Of a stretch of DNA of 64,000 nucleotides, positions 22,648-64,000 are shown in pieces; within the stretch, counting starts at the first letter, position 1; every line of letters starts with the position of its first letter. The DNA is from Orbicella franksi (lineage: Eukaryota), in assembly GCA_964199315.1 (NCBI GenBank), contig OZ116700.1:32984001-33048000 (forward strand). Reading direction: 5' to 3'. Position numbers and translations under genes: made by a program. A model generated the notes under the pieces. The model had not been told where the DNA came from. It did no database searches and saw only the letters and a list, made by a program, of their open reading frames with translations.

Positions 22648-25600
22648 GCGGAGAGCGTGTTTTTTTTTTTTTTTTGTTAACACTTATCCACTGGATAGCG
22701 TTATGAAGCCTTCGAACAACTGCGGTCTTTTTGATAGGAAGAGAACAAAAACCGACAGAATTCGCAATGCTTACTTTTAGCTATCGCGGCCATAATTTTC
22801 TCTCTAACCGTACGTGGATCATCATCTTTATCGGTCGGCACGATATCCTTCTTGTCTTTGTCTGGAGTCAGCGGAATAAGCTCATCTGGGTCGGCCTCAT
22901 TTCCAATAACTACAGTAACAAACCTGACTTTGCCGTCTTCATATTCACCCACGATCTTCTCGATCGCACTTCCGCTGTTGACAGACTTCTTGTCAATCAT
23001 CACCACGATTATCTTCCGGGAATCTGGTCGGGCACCTCCGCTTAGTAAGAAAAAGAGCTGCTTTGTAGTCTCCAGAGCGTTCACCAAATCTGGAGAACCA
23101 GAAACCAACTGGGCGCCTTTAATTATAGACAGCTGTGAATCTTTAGTGGTCTTTTGAAACGGTAGTATTATGTTGGCGTTTTGCCCAAAGACCACCATGC
23201 TGTAAAGATGCTTTTTGACGCCATATTGTTCGATGATTGATTCCATAGTGGACTTGATGAGTTTAAAATTATCACCGCTATCAACAGCGGTTGTGCTGAC
23301 GACAAATGATATGTCTAATCTTGGAAACCTGGTTGTACCTAAAAATAAATAAAAACAAACTGGTAATCACTAGCTCAATCACAATCTAAATTATGCAGCA
23401 CGCATTACGACAAAATTAACTTTAAGTCAAAATTGTTATATATGAATTCAAAGGATTTTAAGATTCAGAACAGGTGAAAAACGAATCAAATTTGCTGCAG
23501 ATCAAACAGTGAATAACAGAAATAATCTACTTTGCAGAAGGGAAGTTGTTTTTATAGTAGTCAATGCGCTTAGCTACACCTAGCTAAGCTCCTAGATAGG
23601 ACTGCACTAGAATGTAATGCACAAAAGTTCAATTCTGCGCGTGTTCTTCTGTACTTATTTAAATCCATTCGCTTTTTGTCTTATTTTTAAAAGCATTTAT
23701 AGATTCATTTTCAAGTGTTATGAATTACTTCCTACAACGATAAGACTGTGATTAGAAATACATCTACACAAAGAGGTTTGAAGAAAAAGAAGGAGGAAAG
23801 TTTGAAAACGAAATTACTTACCACTAAGCAATTTGTCCTCTATCTTATCAGCCGTCTTAATCGGATGATCTGTGTCGTTTGTTTTGATAACATCCTCATC
23901 TGGGAACTCCTTTTCGAAGTCAGGAACAGGCTTGTTACCAATAGCAACAAGAATCACAGCTATCGAGGCCTCTATCAAGTCCTTTGCCGCTTTGTTGATG
24001 GCTGGCATGTTACGACCAGTCGAGGCATCCGTGATAATGACAAGAACCTGAACACAAGGAAGATAACAGACACAGAAGTTAATGTAAAGGCACGACTTAT
24101 ATCAGAGCAATGCTAAAAGTCAATGGAATGGTGAAAGATTTTAACGTTGGGTAATAGCAAAACGAAAACAGAAATTGAAACGCTTTTATTAACGGTAAGA
24201 TGAAATTGTGCAGTACAAATATACAGCCTTTGAAGCAAAGTGTCGTCCAAGAGCATTACCACAGACAGAATTGGAAGGCACGAAGTCACTACCGCCGTTA
24301 ATTACAAAAATCTAATACCAAGTAACATGCGGATGAATAAAGGGACCACAACTGAGTTTGTTATGGAGACCCACGAGTGAAAGGGGCCTATTATCGTTCA
24401 ACTGTCCAATAGCGGCGCTCGTAAATAACGCTTCCTTTTCAGTAACACATACCTTCTGAGCATCTTTCCGGGCAGACTCGCCTTCAAACAGTCTCTTTGC
24501 CGAAACAAGAGCCCTGTCCAGTGCAGGCTCGTCATTGTTACCAGCTATCAAATCAATGTAACTCTCAAGTTGTTTAGGATCGCTGAACCTGTCCCTGAAG
24601 GGAATCCTTATGGAGGCAACTTTGCCAAAAACAATAAGCCCATATTGGACCCTGTCGCTGAAGAATCTCTTCGTTACTTCCTTCACAACATCCAGGATAA
24701 CTCCAAAATTGTTGTCGGTTGGTAGTGCACTAATGGCAAAGGCGAGGTCCAACTTTGGTACTTTGGGCGTCACTGTAAAGTGCGCAAGACAAGATTATAT
24801 ATCTAAAACGGTTATTGCCATTAGTGTGTTTTCTTGAAAAGATAAAAGAACTTAAACAAGGGACTTCGTTTTTATTTCTTTTCTTAAAGTCATAATTAAG
24901 CAGTGGTTAAAAGTGGAACAATTCCTTTTAATGCGCTAAGTCATGGACAGAGTTTCACGACGAAATTTACTCCTTTTGATAAATTGCAATATATGATTGA
25001 ATATAACCGACGCGTAGATCCTTTAGGGTGGTTTTCACTTGAGTGTCGAAAAGTAATTGGTTTTGAATCAACTTCGCAACACGATAAGCTTAAAAAGCTC
25101 GCGCCACTTTTTCATCCAATCAAACGTAAAACCACACCAGTTGTGACTCGTTCGCCCGCGTTTTCCCGCGCTTCGCATCTGCTACCTGTGTTAAATTCAA
25201 GTTTTGATTGGTTCATTGGATTGTGTGTCATTTGTGATTGGCCAAAGTGATTATATTGGTTTTGGTTTTACGACACTCAATGGAAATCTGCCCTAAACAA
25301 ACAACAGGTCCAACTTTGGTATGTGGTACGCTACCTTTAAGGACTTTCGCCATAACTGATTTGCCAAGTTCTGTTGGGTCAACCTCACCAGGAACAACAA
25401 CTAGTACGTCTTTATACGATGAAATTTCCTCGATTTCTTTAGGATCGATATCACCGCCAATGGCAACAGGAACAATCTTTACATCAGCGAATTCCAATTC
25501 TTGAGCTTCCTTCCCTGTTTCTTGTTTATCTCCTATTGGTGATTTGTCTGCAATCACCACCAGGACTTTCTTGGCGTCCTTCCGAGCACTCGACTGGAAC

Positions 25601-26899
25601 AATTCCTCTGCCTTCTGCAGCGCCTTCTCCAGGGCGGGATTTCCAGCCTCATTCTGCATGCTATCAACCGTAGTTAGCCAATTCTCCAGGGATGGGAAGG
25701 TTCTCTCAAAGCCGAGGGTTACCTTTGCGTCAGAGCCGTAAATTATTACAGCATAACGTAGGTCACCAACACCATATTTCTTGATTATGAATTTTACGGT
25801 CTCTTTCACTTTGTCCAATGTTTGCCTAGCATTAAGAGCTGCTGCACTTATGGCGAAGCCCAGGTCGATCTTCTCTGTAATGATCGAGTCTGGAGAAGAA
25901 AATGAAAGAAAATCTAACTTATTGCCCTTTAGATTTTGCTTGGATTATTGGTAAACCCAAATCGTCTCTTACCCTAGGAATGGGTTATTATAGTAGAGTA
26001 GCTGCAAATAATACAAATTTAAAAAAGGTATACATATCACTGGACAAAAGGATATTACTGTTTCTTCATATGGTACACTGCAGAGCGTCTTTCGACGTTT
26101 GTTTGAAGATGTCGGAGGATTCATAATCAATGGTAATAAACTACTAAATTGAAATAAGCGAGTAGCTAGGAACAAACCGTTTAGCACTATCGTCACCAAC
26201 TCCTTCACAACTTCCTCGGGACCGCTGTCTTTTCCTGGCTCGATAACTTCTGGCGTAACGGTATCAGACTCGTCGCCAAGTGCAATGGCAATAACACGAA
26301 CACCATCATTCTTCAGCTTCTCAGACGCAATTTGTACTTCTTCCTCACTGCTGTCTGATCTCTTATCAGTGATAACCACTAAGACCTTCATTGCATTTGG
26401 CCTCGCATCTTCAGCTAAGGCAAAAAGGTATCGCGCTTCTTCCAGAGCTTTGTCAAGAGCTGCGTCACCGAAGGCTTTCTTTACATTATCAACAAGTGTG
26501 CCAAGTTCCTCCTCAGTGTCGAAAACGTTGTCAAACCTGATTTTAACATCAGGTGTGGCGCCAAACGTGATGAGGCTGTACCTGACACTGTGAAGGCCAA
26601 ACTTTTCAACCGTCTCCTTGATGATTTCTTTCGTTTTCTCGAAGTTCTTGTCTTGATCCACAGCAGTTGTACTTATGACGAAGGCAAGGTCCATTTCCGG
26701 TACGAAAAGTGTTTCTGGAAGAAAATGAAAATAGAAACAAAGATCTGGATCAGTTTGCTCACATCAAGGTTCTTGCTGCACTGTGCACATCTACGTGAAA
26801 AGTGTGTTCATATCGGATACTAACTGACCTACAGATAGGCAGACCGACAGAAAAGAACAGACAGATAGATATATACATACACATACAGACACACAGGCT

Positions 26900-26932
<33 letters not shown>

Positions 26933-29900
26933 GTAGAGAAACAGACAGCAACAGACAAATAGACAGTCAGACAGTCAGACAGACAGAGAGACAGACCTAC
27001 AGACCGACTGACCGACCGACCAACAGATAGTACGCGAGTCTGCTGACAAGGATATTGAGTTTATGTTATGCTTTACACATAAAAATATTTGGCAAATATC
27101 ATTGCCAACATGTCAAACATAAGCAAAAATAAATACAACTAAAAGTACCTTCTATAACCTTCGCCATGATTACTTTAACCAGGATCTTAGTGGTTGAAGT
27201 ATCTGGTTTTGTTATAACATCCTTCTTATGCGGCGTTAGCGTTTTCAACTCTGCGCCATCTGTTTCGCCTCCCAACCCAACTGGTATGACCTTGATTTGA
27301 GCCTGCTCCAGAAGAGAAGCTTTTTCACGCAGCTCGTTTTCGTCGCTGTCAGATTTTGTATCTGTTATCACCACCAAAACCTTTCTGACACCGGGGCGGG
27401 AATATTTGTTAAATATTTCCTGTGCTTTTTGGAGCGTAGCAGCCAATGCGGAGCCAGATGCGCGATCAACTGACTTTAAGGTTTTCAGCAGCTCATCGGT
27501 TGGTAAATTATCGTTGAACTGGATTTTAACGTCTGGAGCGGAGCCAAAGACGATGACACTGTAGTGAATTCTCTCCTGACCAAACATTTCTACTATCTCA
27601 TCGATGAGAGCTTTCATCTTTTGGAAGTTGGCTTCCGACTGGGCGGCATTGGCACTGATGGCAAAGGCCAGATCCACTTCTGGTATGATGGGCAAATCTA
27701 CACGTGAACAAAAAGGAAATATAAATATAAAAATAAATAAATTACAGCATTTAGAGAGAGACCCACATCAGCTTTAGCTGGTTTTCATACAGTTCCTCTA
27801 TCCTGGTGGAATTGGAATTTGGGGATGTTCGTTTTGGGGAGGAAGGAAAACCGGAGAACCCGGAGAAAAACCCTCAACAACAAACTCCACCACAAGATGA
27901 CTAAAACTATACATTATTATAGAAATGACGTATTGACAAGCCATATTTGTACGCCTAACGGAAGTAATTATAGGTAATAGATGTTTTAAGTTTTTTGCTA
28001 CAGGATGCAAGAGATGAAGAGCTAGTGATCTCAAGAGGAAGAGAGTTAAAATATTTTGGACCACGATAGAAAGCAGAGAATTGCCGAACATTAGTTCTAC
28101 ATAACGGAAGACGAAAGGAGTGTGCTTTCCTTTCGTGGTAACCATGGATTTGGTTGTTTGTCTTTAATATGTTTACAAATTTTTGAGCAAGAAGAGAGTT
28201 TCTAAAATCATACAAATTAGTTCTGCTTGCCAGGGTTACAAGTTCTATTAAAAAAATCCTCACCTTTCAATACGATGACCATAACTTCATCTCCTAATTT
28301 CTTTGGATCTTCATAACTTTTTTCGCCTTCTATGAGATTCCCCTTGTTCGGTACCACCTTAATAAGTTGACCAGGGTCTGCCTCCTTTCCTACAGCCACG
28401 GCGATAACCTTGATATTTTTGTCTTCTAGTGGTTTCGCAGCTTTCTTTAACATCTCCAATTCATTCCGAGATTTGCTCCCAACAAAGATAACCAAAAACT
28501 TCTTCGCTCTGGGTCTAGGCGGTGCGGTGTCAAACAATTTTTCTGCCCTTTCCAAAGCTTTTATCACATCTGGCTGCCCACGCGGTCGAGAAATGCTCAT
28601 GATATTTTCGATTAATTTGTCCAGATTGACAACCTCCTCTCCAAATGCTGTTACCAAGCCTGGGTTTGTTCCAAAGGGCAGAATGGAATAGCGGATTTGA
28701 TCATATTTTTTGTACTTTTCAATGATGCTTGTCACTGCCTCTTGCATTTTCTTGTATGTTTCTCCCGCATTCGAATCTGAGGTGCCAAAAGCAACGCATA
28801 TGTCCATTTCAGGGACACCAAGAGATTCTGAAACAAAATTTAAAATAACACCGTGAGTACGCCAATGAGTATTGTATCGAGTATTTAACACTTAAAAATG
28901 ATTGCCTTGTTCCTGTCGACAACTGCCAGAAATGTTCTTCATTCCTTCAGCTAAGAACTACAATTCCGACCAAAACGTTTGGGACACTTCAGCATTTTTC
29001 AATAAAAACAGTATTTCAATCCCCCTCCCTCCCCCGTGGATGTCAGGAGTCAAAGTGTGTCATAAATATTCTACAGTCAAAGGACTTCAACATTGTTAAG
29101 GGGGAGCGAAGGAAGGATCCCTGTAGGGCTATTTCTATGACTGAGAATTGTTGGTTTCTCGCAGTTTCCACGTAAAAACGCAAGAACAAAGGGAAGTGTC
29201 CCAAACCCTATTGGTCAGGATTGTATGTTGAAATAAAATAGTCCTGGAGAGTACACGAACACAAACTCACTAGCTTTCATTATGATCTCATCTGCAATTT
29301 TCTCGGGGTCATCTTCTCTGTCTGCTTTGACGATATCATCCTTATCAAGGGTTGCATTTGTCAGTTCTGGTATGTCTACTTCTCTGCCAAGTGCCACAGG
29401 AATGACACGGATTTTGTCATTTTCCAGAGGGACGGCAGCCTTTCTAATGTCCTCTTCAGTGCTACCTGATTTGTTATCAATGATTATAACCAGGACCTTC
29501 TTGGCATCAGGACGGAGATCTGTAAAGTGAGCCAGAACACCAAAACATTATAAACACCATAAGGTCTTGTACAAAATGGTCGATATAGTGTAGCCATAAC
29601 TCTGTAAGACTATTCCAGCGATTTTTGCGGTTCACTTGAAATAGTCAAAAGCTTTAAAGACTCCTGATACGTTATTTCATCCTTAATTTCTAATAGCAAT
29701 ACTCATGAAAAATTACAAAGTCACAAACTTTATAACAGCTAACAAAGTTATTAAACTTCTTACGGAGCTAATCCAATCCCACCTGTTAAAACAGTTCACT
29801 TCTAGCTAGTCTTTTAAATTCTTTAATTGTCTTACAACTTTTTTGTTTCATTACTTGAACCAATACATGTTCTGGTAGTGAGAAAAAAAGAACGATCTTT

Positions 29901-32900
29901 GGTCTGTAGATGTGCGGGAAAGCAGGGAATCTGGACATCGCTTTGGTTTTTTGAAATACTAGGATACTTGAAACATTTTCACATGCACAAACAAAACAGA
30001 TTGTATATTAAGCGATTTTGGTCAATAAAGCAAGCCTTATACATTTGTACGAAAATCATTTTGATTTGACATTGTAGCACCAACCTTCGGCTTCATCGAA
30101 CACTTCTTTTGACTTTTCCATTGCCTTTTGCAGAGACGCACCACTTGATTTCATTTTGCCTCCGTCAATGGCCAGCTTAAGCCTGTCCACATCATCGAAG
30201 ATGGAATTAAATTTAAAGTACACGTACGGTTCTTGGCCGAATGTAAGGAGACTGTACTTGATCTTTCTGATGCCATATTTTCCAATGATTTTGTAAATAA
30301 CCTCTTTCGAATAGCGTAAGTTGTCCTCGGATTCAGTAGCCGTGGTGCTGATGGCCAACAACAGGTCCATTTCAGGTATCGAGATCCTCTCTGCGAACAC
30401 AAAAAAAATGAAGAAAATTTGTTGTTAAAAGCAATGGTAAGGGCTGTATTACGAGACGGGCGTGTAACGCCGGTTTCCGTTTCATGGAGCGATTAGGAGT
30501 ATTGCTACTACTCCCTCCAAAAAAAGTCTATAGGAAGTTTACTCTCAGTTTTTTTTATCAGGTTGCCATGACAACTTGTCGCGATCGAAACGTTGACACT
30601 CCTCGGTAGAGAAAGGCACTGTGTCTTACTAGGGGAACAGTGCTATGATTCCTGTCAGCGCGAAATATGACCTCACAACATGCACTACTCATAGGTGAGA
30701 TATATAGGCAGTGAAGAGTGAAGAGAGTTTCAACAAACCTTTAAAAACAACATCCATCAGTTTGTTCTTGATGTCAGTGGTATCATCTGTTGTTTTCGCC
30801 GTCACTAGGCTACTCTCGCCATCTGTAAGCAATTTAAGTTGTCTCTCATCCGCCTCGTTACCAAGCGCGACAGGAATTACTATGACGTCATTGTCTTGCA
30901 GTGGTTTTACTTCATTTCTTATTTCACTGTCTGAGCTTGAAGATCTTTTGTCAGAAATAACCACAAGGACTTTCTTGGCATTCGGCCTTCCTTCCTTCAA
31001 AAGTATGTCCCATGATGCTTTCACAACCTTAAAATAGAAATAAGAACAGTACGGAGAGTTGGCGAACACGTCACAATCTTGATAATGAGACTTGCACCTC
31101 TCCTTATATAACAAGAAGCAATCATACTGAAAACAAAACGGAACATGCAGACTGACATGCAGACTCATAATCAAGTAATTCCAAATAAATTTGATTGTTC
31201 CAATTAATTAATATGAGACGTCGATTTTCGCTTCGCACCTCCGAAACGCTCCAAAAGACCGTTACGACTACTTCAAGTTGTTAAGACTTGAAAAAGCGCT
31301 ATTTGGGTCAAATGTGCATACCTGAGCAATAGCTCACACGAAATGTCGATTTTCGCTTCACACCTCAGAATCCGTCAAAAACACCGTTACGACTACTACA
31401 AGTTCTGAAGAGTTGTAAAAGCGCTATTTGCCTCAAAAGTGCATACCTGTGCAAAATCTCACATGAAATGTCGATTTTCGCTTCATACCTCAGAATCGCT
31501 CAGAAACACCGTTAATTTAGAACTCTTAGTTTCATTTCATATGTGATTGGCTGTCGCCGTCCAAGTTTTATTTGTCACAGATGTTGTGTGGTACGTTCTG
31601 CATGACTTACGCAGCCTTACCTTTGCCAAATCAGCACTACCAGTGTCCCGATCAAAAGAATTTAAAGTTGCCATCAGTTGGTCATCAGTTTCATAGTAAT
31701 CACCCAAGCGTACAGCTACCTGAGGCTCTTTTCCAAAAAGCACAACGCCATAATGGATGCGTTCACGGCCATATTCGTTCAGAATTGACTCGATAACATC
31801 CTTGGTCTTCTTGAAGTCCTGTTCCCCAAGTGTTGCAGTGGAACTGACTGCTAGAATCATGTCTACCTTCTCAACTGGCGGGTTATCTAATAAGAAAGAT
31901 ATCTTACGTCAATAACTTAGGTCCAGTTCAGACGTCGTGCTTCTACTTAATTTTAAAAAGACTCGATTGTAGCACAGCAGGAACCCGACTCCGACTCAGA
32001 CCGCGTGCAAGAATCGCACCAAATTGAAGATTTACTGAAGCCACGTAATTATTCTCCTCTTAACTACCAGAGAAAACGCAATCCCACCAAAATGCATTAA
32101 TATATTTTATGAATTTTGTTCGACGCGGCACAAGCACGACGTTTGAATCGCTGCGGTGTCAGAGTCGTGTAGCATGACAAAGCTTGCCGAACTTAATTCA
32201 AACGTTTGATTCAGGCGCCGTACTTCTGGCGTCCTTTTGCCCAACTTAATTCCTGAATTTAGTTCGGCACGGCAGAAGCACGACGTCTGAACTGGGCCTT
32301 ACCATGTCAAAGGGCCAGGCTTCTCCCACCACCACCAAAATCTGATTCTGAATTTGATCTTTGTACGTGAAGGCACGCTATTCATTCGAAATTGTAATGG
32401 TCTCAGTTGTAAACTCAAGGGTCTTGTGTATGACTTCACAAATATGTGAATTTAATCTAGTACGGTAAGAACTACTGCTCAAAAAACTCTAGTCAAATAA
32501 CTAGTATGAATTCGTTGCAACTGTGTGAGTTAGCCTAACCGAGAAAAAAACAGGCGAATACTTTGTAAGCAAGAGAGAATAACTACCAAATGAGAATCTT
32601 TCAGTTTTATTATCACTCATTTGAGAGTTCGCCTTCGTAGCGTACCTTCGTCTTTCATCCGAAATGGTGATCGAAAGGTACTTTCTCTTAATAAATATTA
32701 ACCCAGTGTCAAGTACACAGTTTATGAGAATAGAAAAAAAAAACCAACTGCCACTGGGGATATTGTTTTGATGTACTGCCACATTCTCGGAACTAACCTC
32801 ACAAGGTATGCCTGATAATCTGTAAAGAAAACTGAAAGCACATCACCTTTTATAACAACGCTCATGATCTTCCTTCCCAAAGATTTAGGATCTTCATCTT

Positions 32901-35900
32901 TTGGAGATGTTACCAAGTTCTTCCGGTTTGTAGTGACTTTCTCCAACTCGTTAGAATTCGCATCTGAACCAATAGCTACTGGTATAACCTTTAAAGAACA
33001 CATATCATAATTGAGTGACGGAATCGTTCTATCTAAGCTCCATCCATAATTAGACTTTTAATAGATTTTATTAAGCCGTTAAAGCGGAATAATGACTGCA
33101 CAATAATGGTTCATATCAGCAAAAGAATATTGACTTTTATTAATTAAGATCATTTCATTCGCTTAGCCATCATGGTATGTGAGCATGCTCTACAAATATG
33201 GTAAGCATACGCGTGTTTTTTGGAGGCGTTTGTATTTTATTTTATTTTATTGCATTATAATTAATCGAAGCCTATATCCGTGTGTATGCGCAAAACATGG
33301 TAAATCACCTTAATGCCTTCCTTCTCTAGAACCTCTGCTTCTTCCTGGACCTCATCAGGACCGCTGCTGGACTTTGAATCCATGACAACAATCAAGAACT
33401 TCTTAGCCTCAGGTCTGTCTGTCGCCTTATCAAAGACGTCTTTAGCTTTCTCCAAGGACTCTTTAAGATCTGGTACACCAAAGGCAGGAATAATACGGTC
33501 GACACGTTCTCTGAGTTCATCTACCGTTCTGCCATTTTGGAAATTGACGTCTTCGTACGAAGATGAGCCAAATGTGATCACAGAATATCGGATTCTTTCG
33601 GCACCGTAATATGTCATGATGAAGTCAAGGGAATCTTTGATTTTCTTGAAAGTCTGCTCTTTGCCAGCAGCGTTGGAACTGATGGCAAAGGCCAGGTCAG
33701 CCAAAGGAACAGCTGGTAAATAAAACATAACTGGGTAAGCAAGAATGCAATGCATACATATTAACTGTCTAAGTTTGAATCATTTTCTTTTCATCTCCAG
33801 AGCCCAGTCACGTTATTTTGAGTTATTTTGGTCACGTTAAAAATTGTCTTTCAATTGAAGCAAGTCTGAAAATAAAAGTCAACTGAGAAAGAAAAACACC
33901 AAAGAGATAATACTGAACCGTAAAGGAGCAAGGGTGGGTAGGGATTGAGAGGGTTAAAACAGATTACCAACGACGAACTTGAAAACTTTAGGCTAAACTT
34001 TTCGAGATGTGCAAACCATGATGCAGCTTCTTTGACGATAATACATGTTATGCTCGTACAAATTCATTCATTCATTTCCAGGACTAGTACTGTTCTTCCT
34101 AAATAGATTGTTTCCACCGTGATAAACCCTTTCATTTCTTCTACTTTGGTCCTGAAGCAGCCACACTACCATTATGAAAACAAAATACAGGTAGTACCTT
34201 CGCGAAGTGCTGCCTTTCTTACTGGGATTTTGGCTAAATATTCAAAAATAAGGAAATATATTAGTTCAACGACACGTTCAGTGTGTTGCTGTGACATACC
34301 TTTTCTCATTTTGTCCATGATTTCCATGGCAATCTTTTTTGTCTTGTTAGTCACGTATGCTGGTATCACATTATCCACATGCGGTGTTATAGACTTGAGT
34401 TCGTCCTCATCAGACTCTCGACCAAACGCGATAGGAATCACTTCAATATCATCATCCCACAGTGACATGGCCGTGTTCTTGACATCTTTCCCGTCACTTG
34501 TAGATTTCTTGTCCGCGATCACCACCAGCACCCTCTTAGCACCCTCCCGCTGATATTCATCAAACAACTCAGACGCTTTCTTAAGCGCGCTGTCCAAATT
34601 GGCACCATCAGTTGCCCTCTTCTTGAGGTCAATGAAAGCTTTCAGCTGACCATCGGTATCAAAGGTTCTAGAGAACCGTAGCTCGACAGAGGGCTTGTCT
34701 CCAAACACAATGAGGCTGTAGTGGATCCTTTCCTTGCCATATTCATCAACCATGGTCTTGATGATGTCCTTCATCTTTTGGAACTTGCCATTGGCATTAG
34801 ATGACAGTGCGCTGATAGCAAAGATCAAGTTTACCATGGGAACAGCTGGAAGATCTGGAAAATGTCAAAAACGATATTTTTTCTTTAAAGAATTCGTATA
34901 AGCTAATCGTGATGTTATAACGTCGTATCTAACTAACTTAACTTGAAAATATCCTCGCGGCAATATGAAAACGTATTTTTTTTATCACACAGAAACAGCC
35001 CTTACGTGTTTAACACAGTTCAGTTAATTTGATTCCAATTAAAACTGCAAATGAACTCTAAATTGTTCTTTATCAGCGAGGTAAACTCTGATATGCCTAT
35101 CTATATTAAACAGAACAAATGCATGGCGGAAAAATTATCAGTTACCCCGAGCAGGATTCGAACCTTCGACACCCTGATATCATGGAATGTGCTCTAACCA
35201 CTGAGCTACCGAGGCAACCACAGTGGAGTGACACGAATATTAGCTACAAAGGAAACATCGATTTACCAGGAATTTCTGACTTAATTGTTTTCTTCATTTT
35301 GTTTCATTGTTTTTTACAATTTGTTTAGACAAGCACAAATTATGAAAGCAAGTTAGACACTCACTCGTCAATGCCTTTCTCATTATTTCCTCTCCAAGTG
35401 TCTCTGGATCCTCATCCTTTCCAACAATGATCATAAATTTCTTATTAGTTGTTGTCTTCTCCAGCTCTGGCAGGCTGGCCGCAGGACCAACTGCGACTGG
35501 TACTACGACGATATTAACATCCTCCAGTGGTTTAGAGGCTTGTTTCACCTCGCTAGAGTCACTAATGGACTTCTTGTCCATTATGACTACAAGTACTTTC
35601 TTGGCTCCGGGTCGAGACGGAGCTTGTTTGAACATTATCTTTGCTTCCTCAAGAGCTCTCTGCAAGTCGGGTTCACCGGACGGTTGACTTGCTCTCTCTA
35701 AAGCTTTTCGCAATACTTCAGGATCAGGCAAATCTAGGGTGAAGTTTACTTCTCTGTTCACAGTGGTGCCAAATGTGAGCAAAGCATAGTGGATTTTGCT
35801 CGTTTCGTAGCGCTGCGTGATGGAACTTATTGCTTCTTTCATCAGCTTAAATGTTTCATCGGCGTCCTGTGCCGAGGCACTGATGACGAAGCCAAGGTCT

Positions 35901-41900: not shown

Positions 41901-44900
41901 CATACTCACTATCGGTGATTCTCTCGGAGATTTCTTCAGCACACTCTGTTGGAAGAGCGGTGTCATTTATCTTGACAAAATTCGCTTTGTTTGGAGTAGT
42001 TGCTTCCACTTCGTCAGTATCAGCTCGGTTTCCAAAAGCCACCGGAATCACCTTGACTCCATCCTCCTCTAACTTGCTAGCAACGTCCCTTACGTTAGCG
42101 ATAGTGCTTTCAGACTTTCGGTCCAATATAACAACCAGGACCTTTTTCGAGTCGGGACGGCTGCCTTCGTCAAATACTTCCCTGGCTTTTTCTAGGGCAG
42201 CTTGAAGCGACGACCCTCCGGATGGTCTTGGAAGTCTGTTCACAGCATTTTTCAAAGAATCCTCGTTGAGTTGTTGAGTGAATTTTATCCTGACAGACGG
42301 ATCTCGACCGAAGAGGATGATACTGTAGTACACTCGTTGGACTCCATACCTATCAATCAAATCCTGGATAACTTCCTTTATCTTAGCAAAGTTCACATCG
42401 GCTTTAGGTGAGATGGTGCTGATGGCAAATACAAGGTCCATATCAGGAACTGCTGGCAAATCTGATAATCGATCAAGAATTGGAGCAATGGGTCAGACAA
42501 ATTCACAAATACTATAATCATAATGATCACGGATAGATTCAGTTCCTAGTGAACGAAATCTGTAGCTAAATCTAACTGTAGGACAACTTTGGAAGGGGAC
42601 ACAAAGTCGTCATAAGGCTTGACAGGAAAACAACGTTTCCAATCCCCAGCACGGCTACACATCCGATAACTGGTCCGTAAGGGCTTTCTTTCTTTATGGG
42701 TGGTTCAATTGTTAAAGAATACAAATAGAACTTGCATTAATAAGTGATAGGCGGCTGTGAAGGCCACCACTTTCGTTCTAAAAGGAATGGATTTTTTATG
42801 GGCCACAGGTCAAATAGAACAAGTGACAATCGAATATATTTCACACGGCCATTTGTAGGATGAAAGAGACGATTCAATCAAACCTCCCCTCATCAACAAA
42901 TCATCAAGTTACAAAGTCCAAAGGAAACTATCACCGTGACATTGTTTGTATATATGATCGTAAAGTGCCACTATGATGAAATTCTCGATATCCATTTCTT
43001 TACATTTTCGTACGCATTAGGTCTTTCCTAGATATCTTGCCAAATTTCAATTTTCAAGGAACATTAAAACTCGTGGTTTTTGGACCTTAATTTCCGAGAA
43101 TTTACAGCCGCCATTCATTTTCCTTGTTCCAAGTCTTGGTTGAAAATTTGAGAAAATGACGTCATTTTCTCAAAAATACCGCACGGGTTGAAATTATGAT
43201 AACAATTAATGTAAAAAAATTGCACGAATATATGAGCCAAAGTTTTTGCTATTCTTTATGCGAATTGCTGTGCTAATTGTTATTATAATTTCAACCCGTG
43301 TGGTATCTTTGAGAAAATGACGTCATTTTCTCAAATTCTCAACCAAGACTTGGAACAAGGAAAATTAATGGCGGCCGTAAATTCTCAAAGTTAAAGGTCC
43401 AAACGACATGAGTTCTAATGTTCGTAATAGATTGAAATTTGGCAAACAATCTAGGAAAGACTTATTGTGTGCGAAAATGTAAAAAAATGGGTATGGAGAA
43501 TTTGATCATAGTGGCACTTTAATTAGCATAGATTTTTACGATTTATGTATACCTTTTCTCTTTAGTTTTAGTTTGGATTGAGAAGATATATCAAACACTC
43601 AAGACAGTGTTTGACCAGATATCCAAACACCTCGACGTTCGTCAAAAATACTCCGCTACGCGTTGTATTTTCAACTCTCTTCTCGGTGTTTGGAAATGTG
43701 GTCAAACACGGTCTTTCGCGTATGATATTTCACATCAAAAATTGTAAGAAGAAATTGTGATACCTTTCAACACTTTCTCCATGATCTTTTCAGCAGTTAC
43801 ATCAGGATCAAGCTTTCGCTGTGTCACTATGATGTATCCTCTATTGGATGTGATCACTTCCAACTCGCTGGGATCGGCTGACGAACCGACAGCGACGGGT
43901 ACAATTTTAACCCCTCCCTCCTCTAGAGGCACTACGGCCTTCTTCACATCTTCAGGGCGACTCGTGGATTTCTTGTCAGTAATAACAACCAGAACTTTTT
44001 TCACATCAGGTCCAGCTGACTCCGAGTCAAACAATCGTTTGGCTTCTTCTAAAGCTTTCTGCAAGTTAGGTTCCCCTCCAAGACGTTGAGATGACTTTAT
44101 TTTAGCCTTCAAAGAGTTCATGTCAGATTCTTCGCCGAAGCTTAATTTCTGAAGTGCGTTTCTACCAAACACGATGAGGCCATAACGGAGCCTATCAGTG
44201 ATTCCATACTCGTCAACGATTGCAGTAATAGTGTCCTTAATGCGCTCAAAGGTGTCTGAGGCTGACACAGCTGTGGCACTGATAGCAAATCCTAGATCAA
44301 TCTGTGGAACTCGAAGATTGTCTGAAAGATATAAGAGCATAAGTGAAATTTCTGGAATATTGTAAACATATGTACAAAGGTGAGGGTTTGATTGTTATCT
44401 CATGACGGAAAGGAGCACTGGTATTGAAGTGGGTACAAAATTACTTGTGTTAACTACATTAATCACAACTCACCATCAAGTATGGTATCAATGATCTTAT
44501 CTGCGATGTCTCGTGGTTCATCAGTTATGTTTGGTTTGATAACATCTTCTTTGATCGACACGATTGTCTTCACTTCATTCACATTGTCCTCATCACCCAA
44601 AGGAACTGCAATCACTCGTATTCCTTCATCCGTCACCTGTTTGGAAGATTTCATGGCATCCTCGCTGCTGCTATCTGACTCTCTATCGGTCATAATCACT
44701 AAGATTTTTTTCGCATCCACCCTTCCACCGGCGGCAGGGATGAACAACATCTTGGCAGTGCTAAGAGCTTTATCCAGTGCAGCTTCTTTCGATGGCAAAG
44801 GAACTTTTTCAATCAAGTCTTTTAAAGCAGTCAAACTGGCCGATTTATTACCAAATTGCAGATGTATTGTTGGAGGGTCTCTAAATGTTAACAAGGCATA

Positions 44901-47900
44901 ATGCACTTTGCCATGGACGCCCAATCTATCGACAAATTCTTTGATTGTGTCTTGCATTTTCTTGAAATTGGCATCTGATTGGAAGGCTGTGGCGCTGATA
45001 GCAAACGCGACATCCATTTTCGGCACATTGAAATCTAGAGAATAAAATCATGAGGATAAAGAATTAAACAGGAGAATCAACATTTCCAAAAAGTAGATAA
45101 TGTTTTGCAACAAAATGTCGTGGTTCAGTTTTCCAAGGTGCCATCCTCTGTACTTCTGGTCAGTTTTTATTTTATGTCCACAGATGCACTTCTTTGAAAT
45201 TAAATTAAAGAAATTAGAAGAAATTCTTCCACACTTATTGAGCAATAAAAGGCCGACCTTCCCCCCGTCACACCCTACCAACCCCATCCTCCTCTCTTGA
45301 GCATACCTGGATGCGCCACTTATAACGTTTTACCAATTTAGAAAAGACGCTTACGCAAGAGAGACAGTTGTTGACTATATGTTACCCATTTCTATCATTC
45401 CTTGCATCTTAACCCATCAATGTCACTGACATTTAAGGTAACAAAAGCCTCACTGACCTTCTAAAACTTTCTCCATAATGTCCTTAGCCACGTCATCAGG
45501 ATTGTTAGTGTTCTTAACGTCTATCAAGTTGTCTTCATCGGATGTGGTAGCCTTAACCTCATCAGGTGCTGCCTCTCGCCCAAAGGCAACTGGAACTACT
45601 TTGATGCGAGAACTCCAGAGAGCCTCGGCTGACGTCTCCACGTCTTCAAGGCTGCTGTCAGACCTTTTGTCCGTGACGAGCACCAACACCCTTTTAGCAT
45701 CTGGACGAGGAGAAGAATCAAAAAGCCTTTGAACTTCATCGAGTGCTCTTTCCAGGTTTGATCCTGCTCGATTCTTGGCTGCGCTTTGCAGGATAGCTTT
45801 CAGCTGGTCGTCATTAACAGGCTGCGTAAAAGTCACTTTAACAGAAGGTGTGTTTCCGAACACAACGACGCCATATTGGATTGTACCCACACCGTATTTG
45901 TTAATGACCCAGTCAATGATGTCTTTCATCTTTCTGAAGTTTTCACTTGAATCCAAGGCAGCGTTTGCACTTATCGCAAATGCCAAATCTAAATCCTGTA
46001 GCTGGGGTATAGCTGAAAGTAAACAGTAAAACTCAGTGTAATGGCGCTCATTTGGGTTTCGTTAACAGGGCTAGTCATAATTCGTTTGATCATGCGCAAC
46101 AGAATCGTCAAAATCCCTTTGTGCAGCACAGCACAATCAGGAATTGAAAAGAAGAAGAAAACACACCATTGCTTAATTGTAACCTAGTCTATATCAAGTC
46201 AAAACCGATTATATTCCATGTGCCTGAAGAATTGAATTGGATGTTTCATAAATTTGCACGAGGCTATTTCACGGCACAATAAACAGACTGTAAGACCAAG
46301 TTACATTTTGAACGTTTCCATGTGCTTCCGCTAACCCGTGCACTATCTGCCTTCTTCAAACCACTGCTGTTTAGAGTTTTAAAGTTGTACTTACCTTCCA
46401 ATACCTTGTCCATAATTTTATCCCCTATGTCACCTGGGTCTTCATCTTTGTCTACACTCAGTGGAGTCTGCTTGTCGGGGATCATTTTCTCCAACTGCTT
46501 GGAGTTTGCTTCATCTCCTACGGCCACTGCAATGACTGTTATTCCTTCGTCTTCCAGCGGTCTAGCTGCTTCTTTAATATCATCTGACGTCGAAGGCGAT
46601 TTAGCATCAGTTACCACAACCAGAACTTTGTTTGCCTTAGGCCTGCCCGAATCCTTCTCAAAAACCTTCTTGGCTTCTTCTAAAAGCGCCTTGAGATCGG
46701 GTAGTCCCGAGGGTTGTGGTAGTTTGTCGACAGCCTTAAGGAGTTTCCGAACGTCTTGAGGATCTTTTGAGAATGATACAACAGGTGCTGCCGAGTCGCC
46801 ATAAATAACGATGCTGTAACGTATTCGATCAGGATTGTGCATGTTTATGATGCTCTTTACAGCATCCCTCAGTACTTCGAAGGTCTTTTCTGCATCGGTA
46901 GCAGCGGTGTTGATGGCAAAAGTGATATCAATCTCGGGTACATCTGGATAATCTAAAAGAAAACAAAGATTCCGTTAATACTGATAAAGTAAAAAATCCG
47001 AAAATGAGCTTCATTTAAGTGGCAAAGGAAGTCTCGATAATTTCAGCTTACATATCGTGCATTAGAGGAAGTAAAAGATGTACCATGTTTTCCTTTATAT
47101 AACGTAAAATATAAATCATAGATAATTTATATAAACGTAGTGCTAGAAAATGACGATTTATTTAGTTGGGCAGTGGCGTCGACAACACAGTTATGGAAGA
47201 AAACGTTTCTTAAAAACTCACTCGTGCAAATTAATTCCAAATTGAACTCGAAACCGTATGATTACCTATACTAACAACATTCCTTTAAAACGCATTAAGA
47301 AACGTTTTCTTGGCTAACTATAACTGGCTCAGGAATGCTGTGATTCATACTACCAAAACACTGTCATTAGCATCTCTTAAGCGAGAGAAGGAGAGTAACA
47401 TAAAGGCTGATAAGAGACAAATGTGGCATTTTAGACGATCTCACCCCCATTCTCCAAATGATAAACATAATTTGGATATGCTATTCAGGATAACTAGTTG
47501 ACGTGACATTTAGATTCCCATAGTTTTCTTTTATTAATTCCAATTTATCAGCTCTTACCTTCGAGAGCTTTGTTCATGATTTCCTCAGCAGTTTTCTTTG
47601 CACCATCAGTGCTGTTAGCTTCGATGACCTCACCCTGTTCAGGAGTCAAAATATCAAGCTCATCCTTGTCTGACTCTTCTCCGAGAGCAACAGCAATAAC
47701 CTTGATATCATCGGGCCGCATTTTCATAGCCTCCTTCTTCAAATCTTCTCCTCTGCTATCGGACTTCTTGTCTGTTATAACGACTAAGACGTTCTTTGCA
47801 TCGGGGCGAACCTTAGCGGCATCGTTAAAAAGCTTGGTAGCCTCTCTCAGAACCTCACCTAATGCTGCACCACGTCTGTTCTTTGAAATGGAGCCTGAAA

Positions 47901-50900
47901 GTATCAAATGATTTTCCGTTTTCATTAACAAAGTCAGCTTTCAGGACTTGTTTAACTTATGACTGGGGTATGATTCTGAGGATTTTGCTAGTTTGGCAGT
48001 GTACAAGAAAACTCAACAAATGACAGCAACTCACTCTGAGGATAGATAACAACTACAAAGTTGAAACGGGAAATCATAACTTGCAGAAATAATTTGGAAA
48101 CACTGTTTGAGACAAGTTTGAAAAACGTTCTAGAGCATAGAATGCATTCATAAACTCATTCAAATTTTCCAAGCGTCTTAGTCGCACCATAAAGCTTGGG
48201 ATTCATCATTCCTCTCATAACAAAAGTGCTCGCTGACTATCTCAGAAAGGGCCATGGGGAAACACCAATTCCTGTAGTTTCTCAGCACTTACCGATGAAT
48301 CGTTCCAAATCCTCATCAGAGGGCAGCCGGCGATTGAATGGCAGCTCAGTGATTGGTGAATCACCAAACGTGATCACACTGTAGTGAATTCGGTTTGAAC
48401 CAAACTTTTGTACAATCGCCTTAAGAATGTCTTTCATCTTTTCGAAGTTTGTTTCGTCATCTACCGCTCTGGCACTGATAGCAAATGCTAAATTCATCTC
48501 TGGTATCCTGGGGACATCTAAACGGAGCAAAACGAGAACGAAATAAAATGGAAGCATTAAAATTAAAATCAAATATAGCACGCTATATCTCGAACGTGGG
48601 TACCCCGGTATAAAATAATGATATTTTAACGTAATCTCCGAGGTAACGCCCGTTATAACCTGGATTTTATATCTCCGGTACTTAACAGTTTTTAAATCGA
48701 GAGTAACTTTGCTTTTGATATTGAAACCGTTCTCCACCACAACTTCAACGACTAACGATAAACGATATCTTAACACAAACCTTCCTACACAAGCTTCGGT
48801 GATGTGTATTGTCCTTTCATACCGACAATAAACCGTATACATTCTACTTTCTTGGCAGGATGAGCTACTTTGGACAAGAAAATGACATGTTACAGGGATT
48901 CCATGCTGGACAGCCTAAACAACCTGAAACGCTTTGCGGGTTCCTGGGCACCAAGTGTGAGGCGGCTTATCACAATTATTATAAACCATAGTTACCTTTC
49001 AAAACCTTCAACAAAATTATCTCAGCAGTCATGTCGGGATCATCGCCTTCGTCAACATCGACCAGGTTCTCTTTGTTTGGTGTGGTTTTAGATAGCTCAG
49101 AAATGTCTGATTCTGATCCAAGTGCGACGGGAATAACTTTAATGTCATCTTCCTCCAGGAGCTTCGCTTGATTCTCCACGTTGTTTAGAGAACTGCTGGA
49201 TTTCTTATCAGTAATTATCACCAGGACCTTCTTGGCATTAGAGCGACCCTGTGTTTCAAAGAAATTTTTCGCTTCCGCGAGGGCACTGTCTAATAATGCT
49301 CCAGAGCTCTTCCGCACAGAATCTACTAAACTCTGCAATGCTTCGTCGTCTGAGAAAGCTGTATTAAACGAGATTCTGGTAATGGGGACATTTCCAAATG
49401 TAATGACAGCATACTGAATACTAGATGTTCCATATCGATCAATCATGCTCTTGATTATATCCTTCATTTGTTGGAAATTCTCTCTCTCTTTCAAGGCGTT
49501 GGCACTAAGGGCGAAAAGAAGGTCCAATTCTGGAATGGCAGGGGGATCTAAAGGGACAAGAACATGCGTATCAATTTAGCCAATAAAGCTTGGAACTGAC
49601 CTGCATGGTATGTATTTCTATTATTTTACATTCTAGTCCTATTTCGAGGGTGTCTTAGTGCTAGTTACGGTTGTTTTATCTAGACTGATAGGTCGACAGG
49701 AAAAGAACCGAAACGGACAAAGGACACATGAAAGAAAACAACAAAGGAACAGGAAGAAGAAGAAAAAGACGAGGAAGTAAAAGAAGAACAACAACAACTA
49801 CAACAACAACAAGAACTTCTCACCTTCTCGGATTTTCTGTATGATTTCTTCACCCACACCTGATGCATCACCCTCCTTGTCAGTTTTGATGATATTTTGC
49901 TTGTTACTTGTCATAGTTTCAAGTTCCTCGTCGTCAACATTTGAACCAACACCAACAGGCACGACTTGAATATCGTCATCTTCCAAAATCTTAGCTGCTT
50001 CCTCGATGTCGCTGTCATTATTGATGGATTTGTTGTCAAGTATCACAGCAAGGACCTTTTTAGCATCAGGCCGGGCTGTTGCTTGATCAAACAATGTCTT
50101 CGCTTCTTCTAATGCCTTCCGCAGGTCTGGCCCACCTCGGAGTGGAGGGAATGAATCGAGAAGTATCGTCAGCGCCATTTTGTCAGGGAACGTTGGTGAG
50201 AAAGGTATATATGTGTTGGCTGAGTTACCAAACATGAGGACACCATATCTAATACTGGCAAGTCCGTACGTATCCACAATATGTTTCATAACATTTTTCA
50301 TGTTTTCGTACGTCTGCTCAGCCCCGCTGTCTGTCACACTGATTGCAAATCCAAGGTCAACATCGAGGAGCGGCATTGAATCTGGATGGAAAGTAAGTAA
50401 CACGATAATATGGTATCAATATAGTTGTCTCTTGTAAAACGTCTTTGTCGTAATAAATAGTAGTATTATTTTAAAAGAGATGTGAACGTTAATTCTGAAA
50501 TACGTATGTCCGGATTTCTGAAAACAGAAATGCTCGATCGTTTTTTCCTCGCCAGCGACAAAGGGGATGACAAAAAAAATTAAAAGGAATGTCAGTCTTT
50601 TTTTTTTCTCTACTCTCTTATCTTCCTTTTCTTGCTCTTCTCTACTTTTGGTGTTGTTGTTGTTGTGAAATCCACGTGCAAAGTATCGACACGGTTTTCA
50701 TAAACCCAATCATATATTAGAACCCGTTGATACGACCAGCTTAGCATCGCGAAAATGTGTTTTACATGCGATTTCTTCGGGCCAAAAAGAGCCGTATTAG
50801 TGGCGCAGAGTTCCACTAGAAATGTATGGGCGTCTACAAGATGAAAAAATTCAAAGGCTAAAGAACAAAAAAGCAAAAAGGAAATATTCATGAGAAAAAC

Positions 50901-53900
50901 GTGAACCTTCCGAATTCCTTGAGTTTTATTTTTCCTTGACAGTGTCCAAGCTGTTCAACAGTGTGTATTCTTACCATTGTTAGCCTTTTCCATCACTTCA
51001 GCGGCAATTTCCTTCGTACTTGCGGTGTCATTAGTCTCAATGACATTGTTAACGTTTAAGGTTGCCTCTGTCATTTCCTGCGGGTCAGCTTCTTTTCCAA
51101 ACGTGACCGCAATCACTCGGATCCCATCATGCTGCAGTGATCGAGCAACAACCGACACTGTAATTTCATCACTGTCTGACATCTTGTCCATGGCAACCAC
51201 TAGGATCCTTTTAGCATCTGGACGCTTTAACGCTGCCACTTGGAACAGCTCTCTAGCTTTTCGAAGCGCCCTGCCCAAATCTGCTCCCTCGTCATTCTTT
51301 GTAATACGCTGTAAGATCTGTCTTAATTCCTCAGGATCGCTCTCGTCTCCAAAATCAAGTTCTACATTTGGTTCTTTGCCAAATTTGATGACGCTATACC
51401 GAACAGTGGACGAGCCATAAGTGCCGAGGATCTCAGTTATAACAGATTTCATCTTCATGAAGTTATCGTCTGATTTTAAGGCTCTTGCACTGAGGGCAAA
51501 TGCAATATCTAGCATCTCCTCTTCGTCAGGCGTATCTAGAAATTAAAAAAAGACACTGCTAATGAGTCCAATGACGCAAAGAACACTAAAAGCTGCATTT
51601 CACTGACAAGCGAAAACTTGAACTCGTCGTCTCATTCTTTGCCTTAAACGATATCAGGGTGTGAACCATGAAATTAATATAATACCCGCCCATTTTAGAT
51701 TTAAATGTTTCAGCGTCACGCTGTTACCAAGGGATTCCTTGAAAACAGCACCTTGTTAGATCTTCACGTGAGGTTAATTCGCTCGCACAAAGTTCCGCAC
51801 TCAATGTGTTCAATTTTCGGCATTACCTAAAGTCTATACTATTTAAAGGATAAAATGTTGTGATCGTGTCCAAATACACCAATATTCCCGAACTTGCATT
51901 ATTGCTATTTTACGCTAAAGTATAATCCTTATAGCATTTTTAAGCCCAACCCAAAACTACCTTCAAGCACTTTAATCATAATTTTCTCCGCAGCTTTGTC
52001 AGGATTCTCATCTGTATCCATCTCAACCAAGTTATTTTTGTTCCGTGTGATTTCTTCAAGTTCCTCTTCACTCGCTTCTTCACCAAGCACCACAGGCACA
52101 ACTTTCACTCCAGCATTTTTCAGTTCTCTTGCCTTCTCCTTCGTCTTGTCACGATCACCTGACTGTTTCTGGTCCATGATGACAACTAACACCTTTTTCG
52201 CGTCCTGTCTGGCTGTATCCTCGAACATCTTCTTTGCTCTGTCAAGGGCTTTGTCCAGAGATGCACCAGAGATACGAGCGAGTCTGTCAACCCTATCCTT
52301 TAGGATCTCGATGGTGAAACGCTCACTCTCCGTAAACCGAACTCTCTCGGAGGGTTCATCGCCAAACAAAATGAAACTGTATCGAATGTCAGTCTTGCCA
52401 TAACGATCGATCACTGATTTGATGGTGTCCTTGATCGTTTGCAAGTTCTCTTCCGCATCTAAAGAACCGGTGCTTATTGCAAAGCCTAGGTCAAGCTTTG
52501 GAATCTCTGGTAGCTCTGTAAAAGAGAAAGATATTTTACGAATTAAGGGGATACTCAACACTGCTAAAAGAGAATAATAATTGTCATCGTCACTGTTGTC
52601 GTCATTGTCAGCATCATTCCCCAAGTCATCTTCGGGTTGTTTACATCAGTGACTCACCTTTTAGAGACTTATCAATTATTATTTCCGGCCATGTTTGAGG
52701 TTCAATAGGTTCACAAGTGGCAATGTACTCTTTGTTCGTAATTATGACCTCTATGTCATCAATATAAACTTCTGGACCAATCACTGCCGGTACAATTGTC
52801 ACATTCTTCTCAATTAACGATTCGGCAGCTTCCTTCAGGTCGTCGCGGGTATTGGCAGTCTTTTTGTCTACAAAAATGACAACAATTTTCCGGCTGCCTG
52901 GTCTGGGAGGAGCATTGTCAAACAGCTTCTCGGCTTCTTTCAAGGCTTTCACCACGTCTGGCTCGCCAGTAGGACGTCTGAGTTGTTGCACAGTGGCCCT
53001 CAGTGCTTCTTTGCCGCGGCCATCACTGAAGTCAACGACAACGGAATGCGTGTCACCAAATGTCATCAAAGCGTAGCGGAACTTGTCTGTTCCATAATGC
53101 TTGATTATGGCATCCACTGTGTCTATTATCTTGTCAAAGGTGTCCTCAGCATCAACAGCAGCCGCACTCAGAGCAAAGACGAAGTCGATGTCAGGGATAT
53201 CTCGAGTATCTGCAATACAATACACGAATATTATAAGAGCACCAGAGTCAGGCCTTGCAGAGACAACTATTGTAACACATTATGAACGACTGGAATACAT
53301 TCATTTGAACTATTCAGCACTAAACGTTACTTGGAGCGGTTTTCAATTGAGTGTCGTAAAACCAAAACCAAACCAATTACTTACCAATTAGACTACTCAG
53401 CCAATCTCAAACCATAGTACAACCAAAATTAAAACTTGAGTAATTGCCTGATAACTTTCGACACTCAATTGAAAACGCTCAAGTGCAACTTTCAATAACA
53501 TGTATTATCAGCCCAGTCGAGCTTTTGTTTAAAGATCGCCCTACAGGAATCCCGTTTGACTGTAATTTACTTGACAATATAAAATCAAACCCATGGAAAA
53601 AAAAGAAGTAATGTACTCCTTACCTTTGTCAATAGTTATAATAATCACCTCAGCCACGGAATCTGGATTGTCAGTGGTATTGGTAAGAACTGTAATTTCG
53701 GTTACAACATCTACTTCCGGTTTATCCACTTCATCACCAACACCAACAACAATCACTTTGACGCGATCAGCCTGTAATAACCTTGACGACGCCTTGACAT
53801 CATCTAGCTTGCTATCAGACTTGCCGTCAACCATTACCACAAGTATATTCTTAGCCGTTGGTCTCTGGGTGGAGGCCGCATTGAAGAGATCTCGCGCTTT

Positions 53901-63978: not shown

Positions 63979-64000
63979 CTGGTAAAAACCAAACATAACA

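Follow-up and report, generated by a model that had tools for sequence, protein, structure and literature searches.

The 64,000-nucleotide stretch of the stony coral Orbicella franksi analyzed here (GenBank assembly GCA_964199315.1, contig OZ116700.1, positions 32,984,001 to 33,048,000; the window) carries on its minus strand a run of open exons of approximately 185 codons each, which encode a long array of VWA domains. Within this array we confirmed a three-domain super-repeat, in which the domain classes A1, A2, and B follow one another in gene order. The most likely reading of the window is that it contains the latter half of a single-copy, expressed gene for a giant, predicted secreted protein of matrix type. 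A hidden Markov model (HMM) trained on the window's own exons detected 37 to 38 VWA domains within the window, and three of these, r10, r11, and r12, scored 67 to 73 bits against PF00092, compared to the Pfam gathering cutoff of 23.8. The domain numbering of a first-pass annotation of this DNA was reproduced by the HMM matches, with r9 (its VWA9) at 53201-52653 and r32 (its VWA32) at 25878-25333 on the minus strand.

The super-repeat is visible in the length of one loop, which was counted as the number of residues between the conserved Phe ending helix alpha3 and the Arg of the RPxAK motif and which, in the intron-split domains r22, r27, and r28, was worked out by hand at the GT..AG sites. From r9 to r24, the loop had 5 residues and then passed through 4, 6, and 5 residues five times (r10 to r12, r13 to r15, r16 to r18, r19 to r21, and r22 to r24). 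From r25 to r32, it passed through 4 and 5 residues (r25 and r26), then 4, 6, and 5 (r27 to r29), and then 4, 6, and 4 (r30 to r32). This recount of r9 to r32 matched the cycle of 4, 6, and 5 residues described in the first-pass annotation, and each of the loops that it had quoted (EDTA, QVAALK, DQATA, ETQG, NDAAKV, and EKDSG) was found. Two markers that it had reported to vary together with the loop cycle, a T or N residue and a G-x-P motif, did track class at HMM columns 22 and 83: all nine B domains had Thr at the former and Pro at the latter, and the A domains carried N (or H, D, or K) at column 22 and A or S at column 83. Domain r32, described as B by both markers yet with a 4-residue loop, was seen to be so in the window, and its ortholog keeps the 4-residue loop. 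Domain r25 was A1-like, making r25 and r26 a unit without A2. Upstream, the loops of r7, r8, and r9 had 4, 6, and 5 residues and r8 grouped with r14 in trees, and these three domains look like a further, degenerate unit. The triplets of the earlier tally of seven triplets plus one incomplete unit were upheld, but the tally itself becomes approximately nine units (r7 to r32), one of which lacks A2. Beyond the loop, 12 alignment columns discriminated between the classes at p ≤ 0.002, compared to 0.37 expected, and columns 22, 33, 48, 83, 98, and 143 also did so in a second species.

The same period was measured in pairwise identities computed over 186 aligned columns. Among r9 to r24, identity was 40.3% at a lag of 3 domains, 38.1% at a lag of 6, and 41.5% at a lag of 9, compared to approximately 34 to 35% at other lags. 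Equivalent positions were thus more alike than neighbors (40.3% at lag 3 versus 35.1% at lag 1). The period-3 excess was 4.7 percentage points (z = 6.2), none of 5,000 shuffles of domain order gave an excess as high (p < 2e-4), and periods of 2, 4, and 5 gave no identity signal in r9 to r24. The off-diagonals at period 3 that had been expected in an identity matrix were accordingly found in this region. Identity within classes was 38.5 to 39.4%, and that between classes was 36.6% for A1 and A2, 35.1% for A1 and B, and 32.7% for A2 and B. When each domain in turn was left out and assigned to its nearest class, the earlier label was recovered for 22 of 24 domains and the distinction between A and B was right for all 24; in the second species, 23 of 24 were recovered.

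Trees led to the same grouping. In a first tree, made from the window's domains, the class labels required 10 changes compared to 19.4 for shuffled labels, and none of 200 shuffles was as low. A stronger tree was then made from the domains of the two species by careful maximum likelihood (ML) with the marker columns 15, 22, 83, and 96 to 101 removed. This tree separated A1 plus A2 from B plus the upstream-type domains (support, 94/94) and placed A2 in one clade (support, 87/88). Four labels required 4 changes on it, where the minimum is 3 and the shuffled mean was 29.5 (0 of 200 shuffles as low), and all 24 ortholog pairs were sisters, with a pairing support of 92 to 100%. By both measures (z = 6.2; 4 tree changes compared to 29.5), the subtypes recur at a fixed interval. 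The super-repeat passed the refutation test set for it beforehand, since the domains clustered by position modulo 3; of the three clades that had been foreseen, the split between A and B and the A2 clade were recovered, but an A1 clade was not. The class signal amounts to 3 to 6 points of identity, a small figure in absolute terms and one that might be expected of chance, of an alignment artifact, or of an artifact of marker choice. Each of these is made vanishingly improbable by the order-shuffle result, by the recovery of the classes without the marker columns, and by the replication in a second species.

At the discriminating columns 22, 33, 53, 83, and 143, the B domains had the same states as the domains upstream. 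Because of these shared states, and because the two lie on the same side of the tree, B is the array's ordinary domain type, and A1 and A2 are a derived pair interleaved with it. The upstream domains belong to the same locus: 24 further VWA domains lie upstream of the window, bringing the number at the locus to 62. The earlier count of 38 was therefore too low; the gene size is corrected to approximately 62 VWA domains, and the former VWA1 is the 25th domain. This non-periodic half of B-like domains provides a built-in control within one gene. Domains g04 to g24, all upstream, gave no period-3 signal by the same identity statistic (z = 0.08), their loops nearly all had 5 residues, and their column 22 was mostly Thr and their column 83 mostly Pro. 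Domains r1 to r6 formed a transition zone with mixed markers. Downstream of the array, a GON domain was found at 14379-13732 together with many Kazal domains. The order of domains along the locus reads Kazal-GON-VWA-Kazal-Kazal, approximately 59 VWA, Kazal-Kazal-VWA-GON-VWA, and many Kazal.

The exon structure of the array was supported by RNA from libraries labeled as coral metagenome. In the contigs of two independent RNA studies, and in the raw poly(A) reads of another, r9 to r14 were spliced consecutively on the minus strand at GT..AG sites, with joints at 53211-52658 / 52515-51961 / 51535-50975 / 50381-49824 / 49547-48996 / 48517-..., and the exon limits from RNA agreed with the predicted exon lengths. 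One RNA contig of 9 kb began in r14, and raw-read run X21 gave no matching reads. The domains encoded by single exons had 179 to 188 codons, in multiples of three, and all were in phase 1-1; the terminal GK or GE of many domains as first read is splice-donor read-through and not protein.

We then compared the array with those of other assemblies. A search with r13 against 1.84 billion representative proteins returned approximately 100 single-exon fragments, many of which were one-to-one orthologs of single domains. These orthologous fragments were 55 to 94% identical to one domain, compared to approximately 40 to 47% for the next best, and all of them kept the loop length of their class. A second assembly (ENA ERZ25071792), in which three overlapping loci of one 2-Mb contig were stitched into 52 kb, contained 35 VWA domains. 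Each domain from r4 to r36 best matched the domain at the same position (47 to 65% identity), the introns within domains were at the same HMM positions, and the loop cycle was identical, including the A2-less unit of r25 and r26 and the 4-residue loop of r32. No domain had been gained or lost among these 33. A third assembly (L015, a contig of ENA ERZ25067889) was collinear for r7 to r15. In a more divergent contig, loop lengths, markers, and mean identities to each class gave the order A2-B-A1-A2-B-A1-B-A1, with best identities of 42 to 49% and without one-to-one orthology; this contig is more likely a distant ortholog, because the window's own genome contains no close paralogous array. An argument for constraint on loop length was also considered and set aside: approximately 10 of approximately 24 single-exon orthologs differed in exon length and never in the alpha3-beta4 turn, which is too short a target for significance.

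When r18 was compared to an 87%-identical relative, nonsynonymous divergence (dN) was 0.078 and synonymous divergence (dS) was 0.615, giving a dN/dS of approximately 0.13; against orthologs of 60 to 70% identity, dS was saturated and dN was 0.22 to 0.28. These sequence comparisons indicate that the VWA domains are under purifying selection. Same-class paralogs were approximately 39% identical, compared to approximately 58% for orthologs between two coral assemblies. The first-pass annotation had considered the duplications to be old, citing introns without similarity between units. Both statements held, as no intron similarity between units appeared in a self-comparison of the DNA and each domain had its own one-to-one ortholog.

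Taken together, these results suggest that the super-repeat probably arose by an ancient amplification of a three-exon A1-A2-B cassette that has since been frozen under purifying selection, a mechanism that we infer from the domain comparisons. A long array of B-type exons would have existed first, and one B-type copy would have diverged into an A type. The A exon would then have been duplicated into A1 and A2, as may be read from the nesting of A2 inside A1 in the tree, and unequal crossing-over between symmetric exons would have turned the whole cassette into a tandem series, long before the split of the compared coral lineages. Afterwards, each domain would have remained under purifying selection with none gained, lost, or homogenized, leaving in the C-terminal half the nine or so tandem units of r7 to r32, including the one that lacks A2. 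The periodicity would then be at minimum a by-product of cassette history, and a role as a ruler would be an addition to it. If the same-class exons had instead been kept alike by gene conversion, DNA matches between exons of one class would be expected, and the weak exon-exon matches detected were in fact mostly of this kind (r18-r12, r21-r18, and r24-r21). However, these matches reached only 70 to 77% over approximately 100 nucleotides, protein identity within classes was only approximately 39%, and positional orthologs paired at 92 to 100% support, a pairing that conversion would erase. Such concerted evolution is highly improbable and, like chance, is effectively excluded.

The inter-unit distance matrices of A1, A2, and B were uncorrelated in Mantel tests (r = 0.10, 0.25, and -0.30), the signal being saturated, and the amplification is for this reason too old for the order of the unit duplications to be recovered. 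Several further points weigh against the cassette origin or against the gene model in which it is set. A1 was paraphyletic around A2 in the two-species ML tree, and the separation of A1 from A2 in the leave-one-out assignment was weak for r20 and r28. A quick tree of 58 domains, used for the broad split of A from B plus upstream domains only, placed r10 with r32, a grouping that was gone in the two-species trees. Congruent class trees, which would be the direct signature of cassette duplication, were uncontradicted rather than demonstrated. The age of the amplification is a relative one, predating the split of the compared assemblies. Finally, that one transcript joins the VWA array to the GON and Kazal parts is a prediction.

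The positions of the class differences were examined on an AlphaFold2 model of r13, which had a predicted local distance difference test score of 96.4 and the order b1-a1-b2-b3-a2-a3-b4-a4-b5-a5-b6-a6 of a VWA fold. A Foldseek search with this model returned VWF A3, PTMP1, collagen VI N5, and integrin I domains, with template modeling (TM) scores of approximately 0.8. In the model, the N/T-F marker was in the first turn of alpha1, right after the beta1-alpha1 loop, and the G-x-P/A marker was in the alpha2-alpha3 loop, right before alpha3. The class-specific columns 15, 22, 83, and 118 were in the beta1-alpha1, alpha2-alpha3, and beta4-alpha4 loops, and the stretch of variable length ran from the end of alpha3 through the turn that leads to beta4. 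In the standard VWA topology, those loops form the ligand- and metal-binding face and the alpha3-beta4 turn is at the opposite end, near the termini. By analogy, the length-variable turn of the coral domains would be close to the two termini and so to the junctions between domains. A functional metal ion-dependent adhesion site (MIDAS) was not found: the consensus was F-A-I-S-a-T/N-A-x, and the Asp of DxSxS was aligned with Ser in the profile alignment, in which PTMP1 has FDASSS and collagen VI has IDGSNN where the coral domains have S-x-T/N-x-x. The metal site is degenerate. A MIDAS is not necessary for membership of the VWA family.

Whether the periodicity also serves a function is a separate matter. 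In a functional super-repeat, A1-A2-B would be a structural unit with a fixed spatial period, used for periodic binding of a partner or for self-assembly. This we consider doubtful, although several observations fit it. Such an array would display A-pair and B surfaces at regular intervals, for example, to collagen-like fibrils, and the four class-specific columns of the model are on the usual ligand face. The order and number of units and both of their irregularities were kept between species at approximately 58% identity, with 33 domains unchanged, and the cycle recurs in the more distant assembly. Moreover, the nearest solved relatives (VWF A3, PTMP1, and collagen VI alpha3) bind collagen or assemble matrix. 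Conversely, exon and linker lengths were uniform (179 to 188 amino acids, phase 1-1), with no boundary that marks the triplet, and neither net charge, isoelectric point (pI), Cys, nor N-glycosylation sites showed a period along the array. No period was seen in the protein's own N-terminal half, and there is no known partner. Domain order and number were equally conserved in the non-periodic r4 to r8 and r33 to r36, and conservation is therefore not specific to the super-repeat. A complex prediction with r10 (A1) and r11 (A2) as separate chains gave a score of 0.00, which weighs neither way. The ligand-face residues and the conserved order are compatible with a functional periodicity and equally with plain descent under purifying selection. 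It is unlikely, in our estimate, that the A1-A2-B cassette is a true extracellular molecular ruler, serving as a template on which another component of the coral matrix is attached or packed periodically. If it were, the partner could be fibrils, such as those of the mesoglea or of the organic matrix of the skeleton, and the non-periodic half would be a plain spacer. The second half of a protein of well over 10,000 residues would then display A-pair and B surfaces in alternation, with a constant spacing of three domains. As far as we know and within the literature searched, no super-repeat ruler has been described outside muscle proteins or from VWA domains, and this would be the first of either kind.

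Table 1. VWA domains of the window and its surroundings, with class and loop. Positions are those of the window unless a contig position is given; (-), minus strand.
Feature	Position	Strand	Remarks
Upstream array, 24 B-like non-periodic domains	contig 33048001 to ~33085500		continues beyond window end
r1-r7	56256..64000	(-)	transition zone, mixed markers; array runs past window end
r7 (g31), possible A1 of degenerate first unit	54853..56612	(-)	loop 4 RGST; column 22, N; column 83, Pro
r7 intron	at HMM position ~125	(-)	splits domain
r8 (g32), A2-like	53619..54161	(-)	loop 6 NAASTQ; column 83 without Pro
r9, B	52658..53211	(-)	loop 5 DNAPP; T-F; G-E-P-D; exon limits from RNA contigs
r10, A1	51961..52515	(-)	loop 4 EDTA; limits from RNA joints
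r11, A2	50975..51535	(-)	loop 6 QVAALK; limits from RNA joints
r12, B	49824..50381	(-)	loop 5 DQATA; limits from RNA joints
r13, A1	48996..49547	(-)	loop 4 ETQG; limits from RNA joints
r14, A2	47554..48517	(-)	loop 6 NDAAKV; split into two exons by an intron, HMM position 74
r15, B	46390..46947	(-)	loop 5 EKDSG
r16, A1	45453..46004	(-)	loop 4 DSSP
r17, A2	44469..45029	(-)	loop 6 IPAAGG
r18, B	43762..44313	(-)	loop 5 DSESA, then G in place of R
r19, A1	41908..42453	(-)	loop 4 DEGS
r20, A2	40901..41455	(-)	loop 6 KASNGA
r21, B	38754..39896	(-)	loop 5 DRASP; two exons
r22, A1	37405..38308	(-)	loop 4 SSGG; donor 38029 joined to acceptor 37672
r23, A2	36252..36806	(-)	loop 6 KEENGG
r24, B	35363..35914	(-)	loop 5 KQAPS
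r25, A1-like	34295..34846	(-)	loop 4 DEYQ; unit without A2
r26, B	32845..33713	(-)	loop 5 DKATD; two exons
r27, A1	30737..31878	(-)	loop 4 LKEG; donor 31620 joined to acceptor 31028
r28, A2	29272..30382	(-)	loop 6 DEAEDL; read by hand across phase-1 intron
r29, B	28259..28816	(-)	loop 5 DTAPP
r30, A1	27147..27689	(-)	loop 4 NKYS
r31, A2	26176..26703	(-)	loop 6 ALAEDA
r32, B by T, G-x-P, and overall similarity	25333..25878	(-)	loop 4 QSSA, kept in ortholog

Introns within domains were found at recurrent profile positions, which were approximately 109 (g06, g09, g18, r33, and r35), approximately 80 (g08 and g10), approximately 138 (r26 and r36), 95 to 100 (r22, r27, and r28), and 68 to 74 (r14 and r21). 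These positions were independent of A1/A2/B class, and those of r7 to r36 were kept in the second assembly. In the intron between r11 and r12, approximately 30 nucleotides at 50575-50605 collected RNA reads on both strands, with ends that continued in unrelated sequence (run X23, 23 and 17 reads; also contigs of X1 and X14); this is probably a short element common to other abundant transcripts. Tandem repeats were present in introns at 31213-31514 (period of approximately 125 bp, 86% identity) and 26831-26996, and an interspersed repeat of approximately 200 bp in the intron at 63200-63402 had at least 40 copies of 79 to 88% identity on many contigs. In the related coral of L015, the 7-kb intron between the orthologs of r13 and r14 contained, at 16548-17141, an opposite-strand open reading frame (ORF) with a GDSL-lipase Pfam match.

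At the C-terminal end of the array (window 12800-19262), VWA r36 was followed by Kazal, Kazal, VWA r37, GON, VWA r38, and many Kazal domains, an order that resembles the N-terminal order of the locus. The upstream start of the locus (to approximately contig 33092500) comprised a Kazal domain, a GON domain, a divergent VWA domain, and a pair of Kazal domains, and an ORF ahead of these, at approximately window coordinate 108500, had a hydrophobic N-terminal stretch without a Pfam match that may be a putative signal peptide. No close paralogous array was found elsewhere in the Orbicella franksi genome. The sole other places with related VWA exons were C11:14425307-14452202, a cluster of five VWA exons on both strands, and C5:25920729-25921262, with 27 to 37% identity to r13. 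The VWA domains of window 18062-64000 and of the DNA upstream were nearly Cys-free (0 to 2 per domain) and mostly acidic (pI of approximately 4.3 to 5.8). Extracellular VWA arrays often have terminal disulfides, and a near-absence of Cys is unusual among them.

Among solved structures, the best profile match to the coral array was collagen VI alpha3 N1-N10, with an E value of 2e-77 over many domains. Like the coral protein, collagen VI alpha3, of which N5 was the Foldseek match, is a matrix protein with a long tandem array, each exon-like module of which contains one VWA domain. However, collagen VI has approximately 10 to 12 VWA domains compared to approximately 62, and the coral array is flanked by GON/Kazal domains and is nearly Cys-free. 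The coral protein is not a collagen VI chain, because the 184 kb surrounding the gene, read in all frames, had no run of at least six Gly-X-Y triplets. We know of no super-repeat described for collagen VI. The mussel byssus protein PTMP1 (PDB 4CN8) was the best single-sequence PDB match (E value, 6e-16; 2e-44 with the profile) and is likewise a tandem-VWA, extracellular structural protein of an invertebrate, but it has only two VWA domains and carries the metal-site Asp/Ser that the coral domains lack. VWF A3, the top structural match (TM, 0.81 to 0.85), is a single domain of 22 to 23% identity, and its likeness to the coral domains is one of fold only.

Super-repeats are a textbook case of giant modular proteins that encode length or spacing, and the well-studied ones are intracellular proteins of muscle. 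The super-repeats of titin and nebulin act as rulers, and the duplication of multidomain blocks is known in these proteins (PMC5648799, PMC7754682). In the titin A-band (7 and 11 domains) and in nebulin (7 modules), as in the coral array, subtypes recur at a fixed multidomain interval, equivalent positions are more alike than neighbors, and the origin lies in the duplication of multiexon blocks. The coral array differs from both in that it is built from VWA domains rather than Ig/Fn3 domains or nebulin modules, is extracellular rather than sarcomeric, has a period of 3 that extends over half of the array, has no known periodic partner, and is at most a putative ruler. A literature search of incomplete coverage found no coral protein like this one with VWA, GON, and Kazal domains and no description of a VWA super-repeat. 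Compared to the muscle proteins, the coral case is an extracellular, VWA-built array from an early-branching animal, expressed, single copy, and conserved exon for exon between corals, and its internal non-periodic half makes it a clean system in which to ask whether the periodicity of a domain array is functional or is the frozen record of a cassette duplication.

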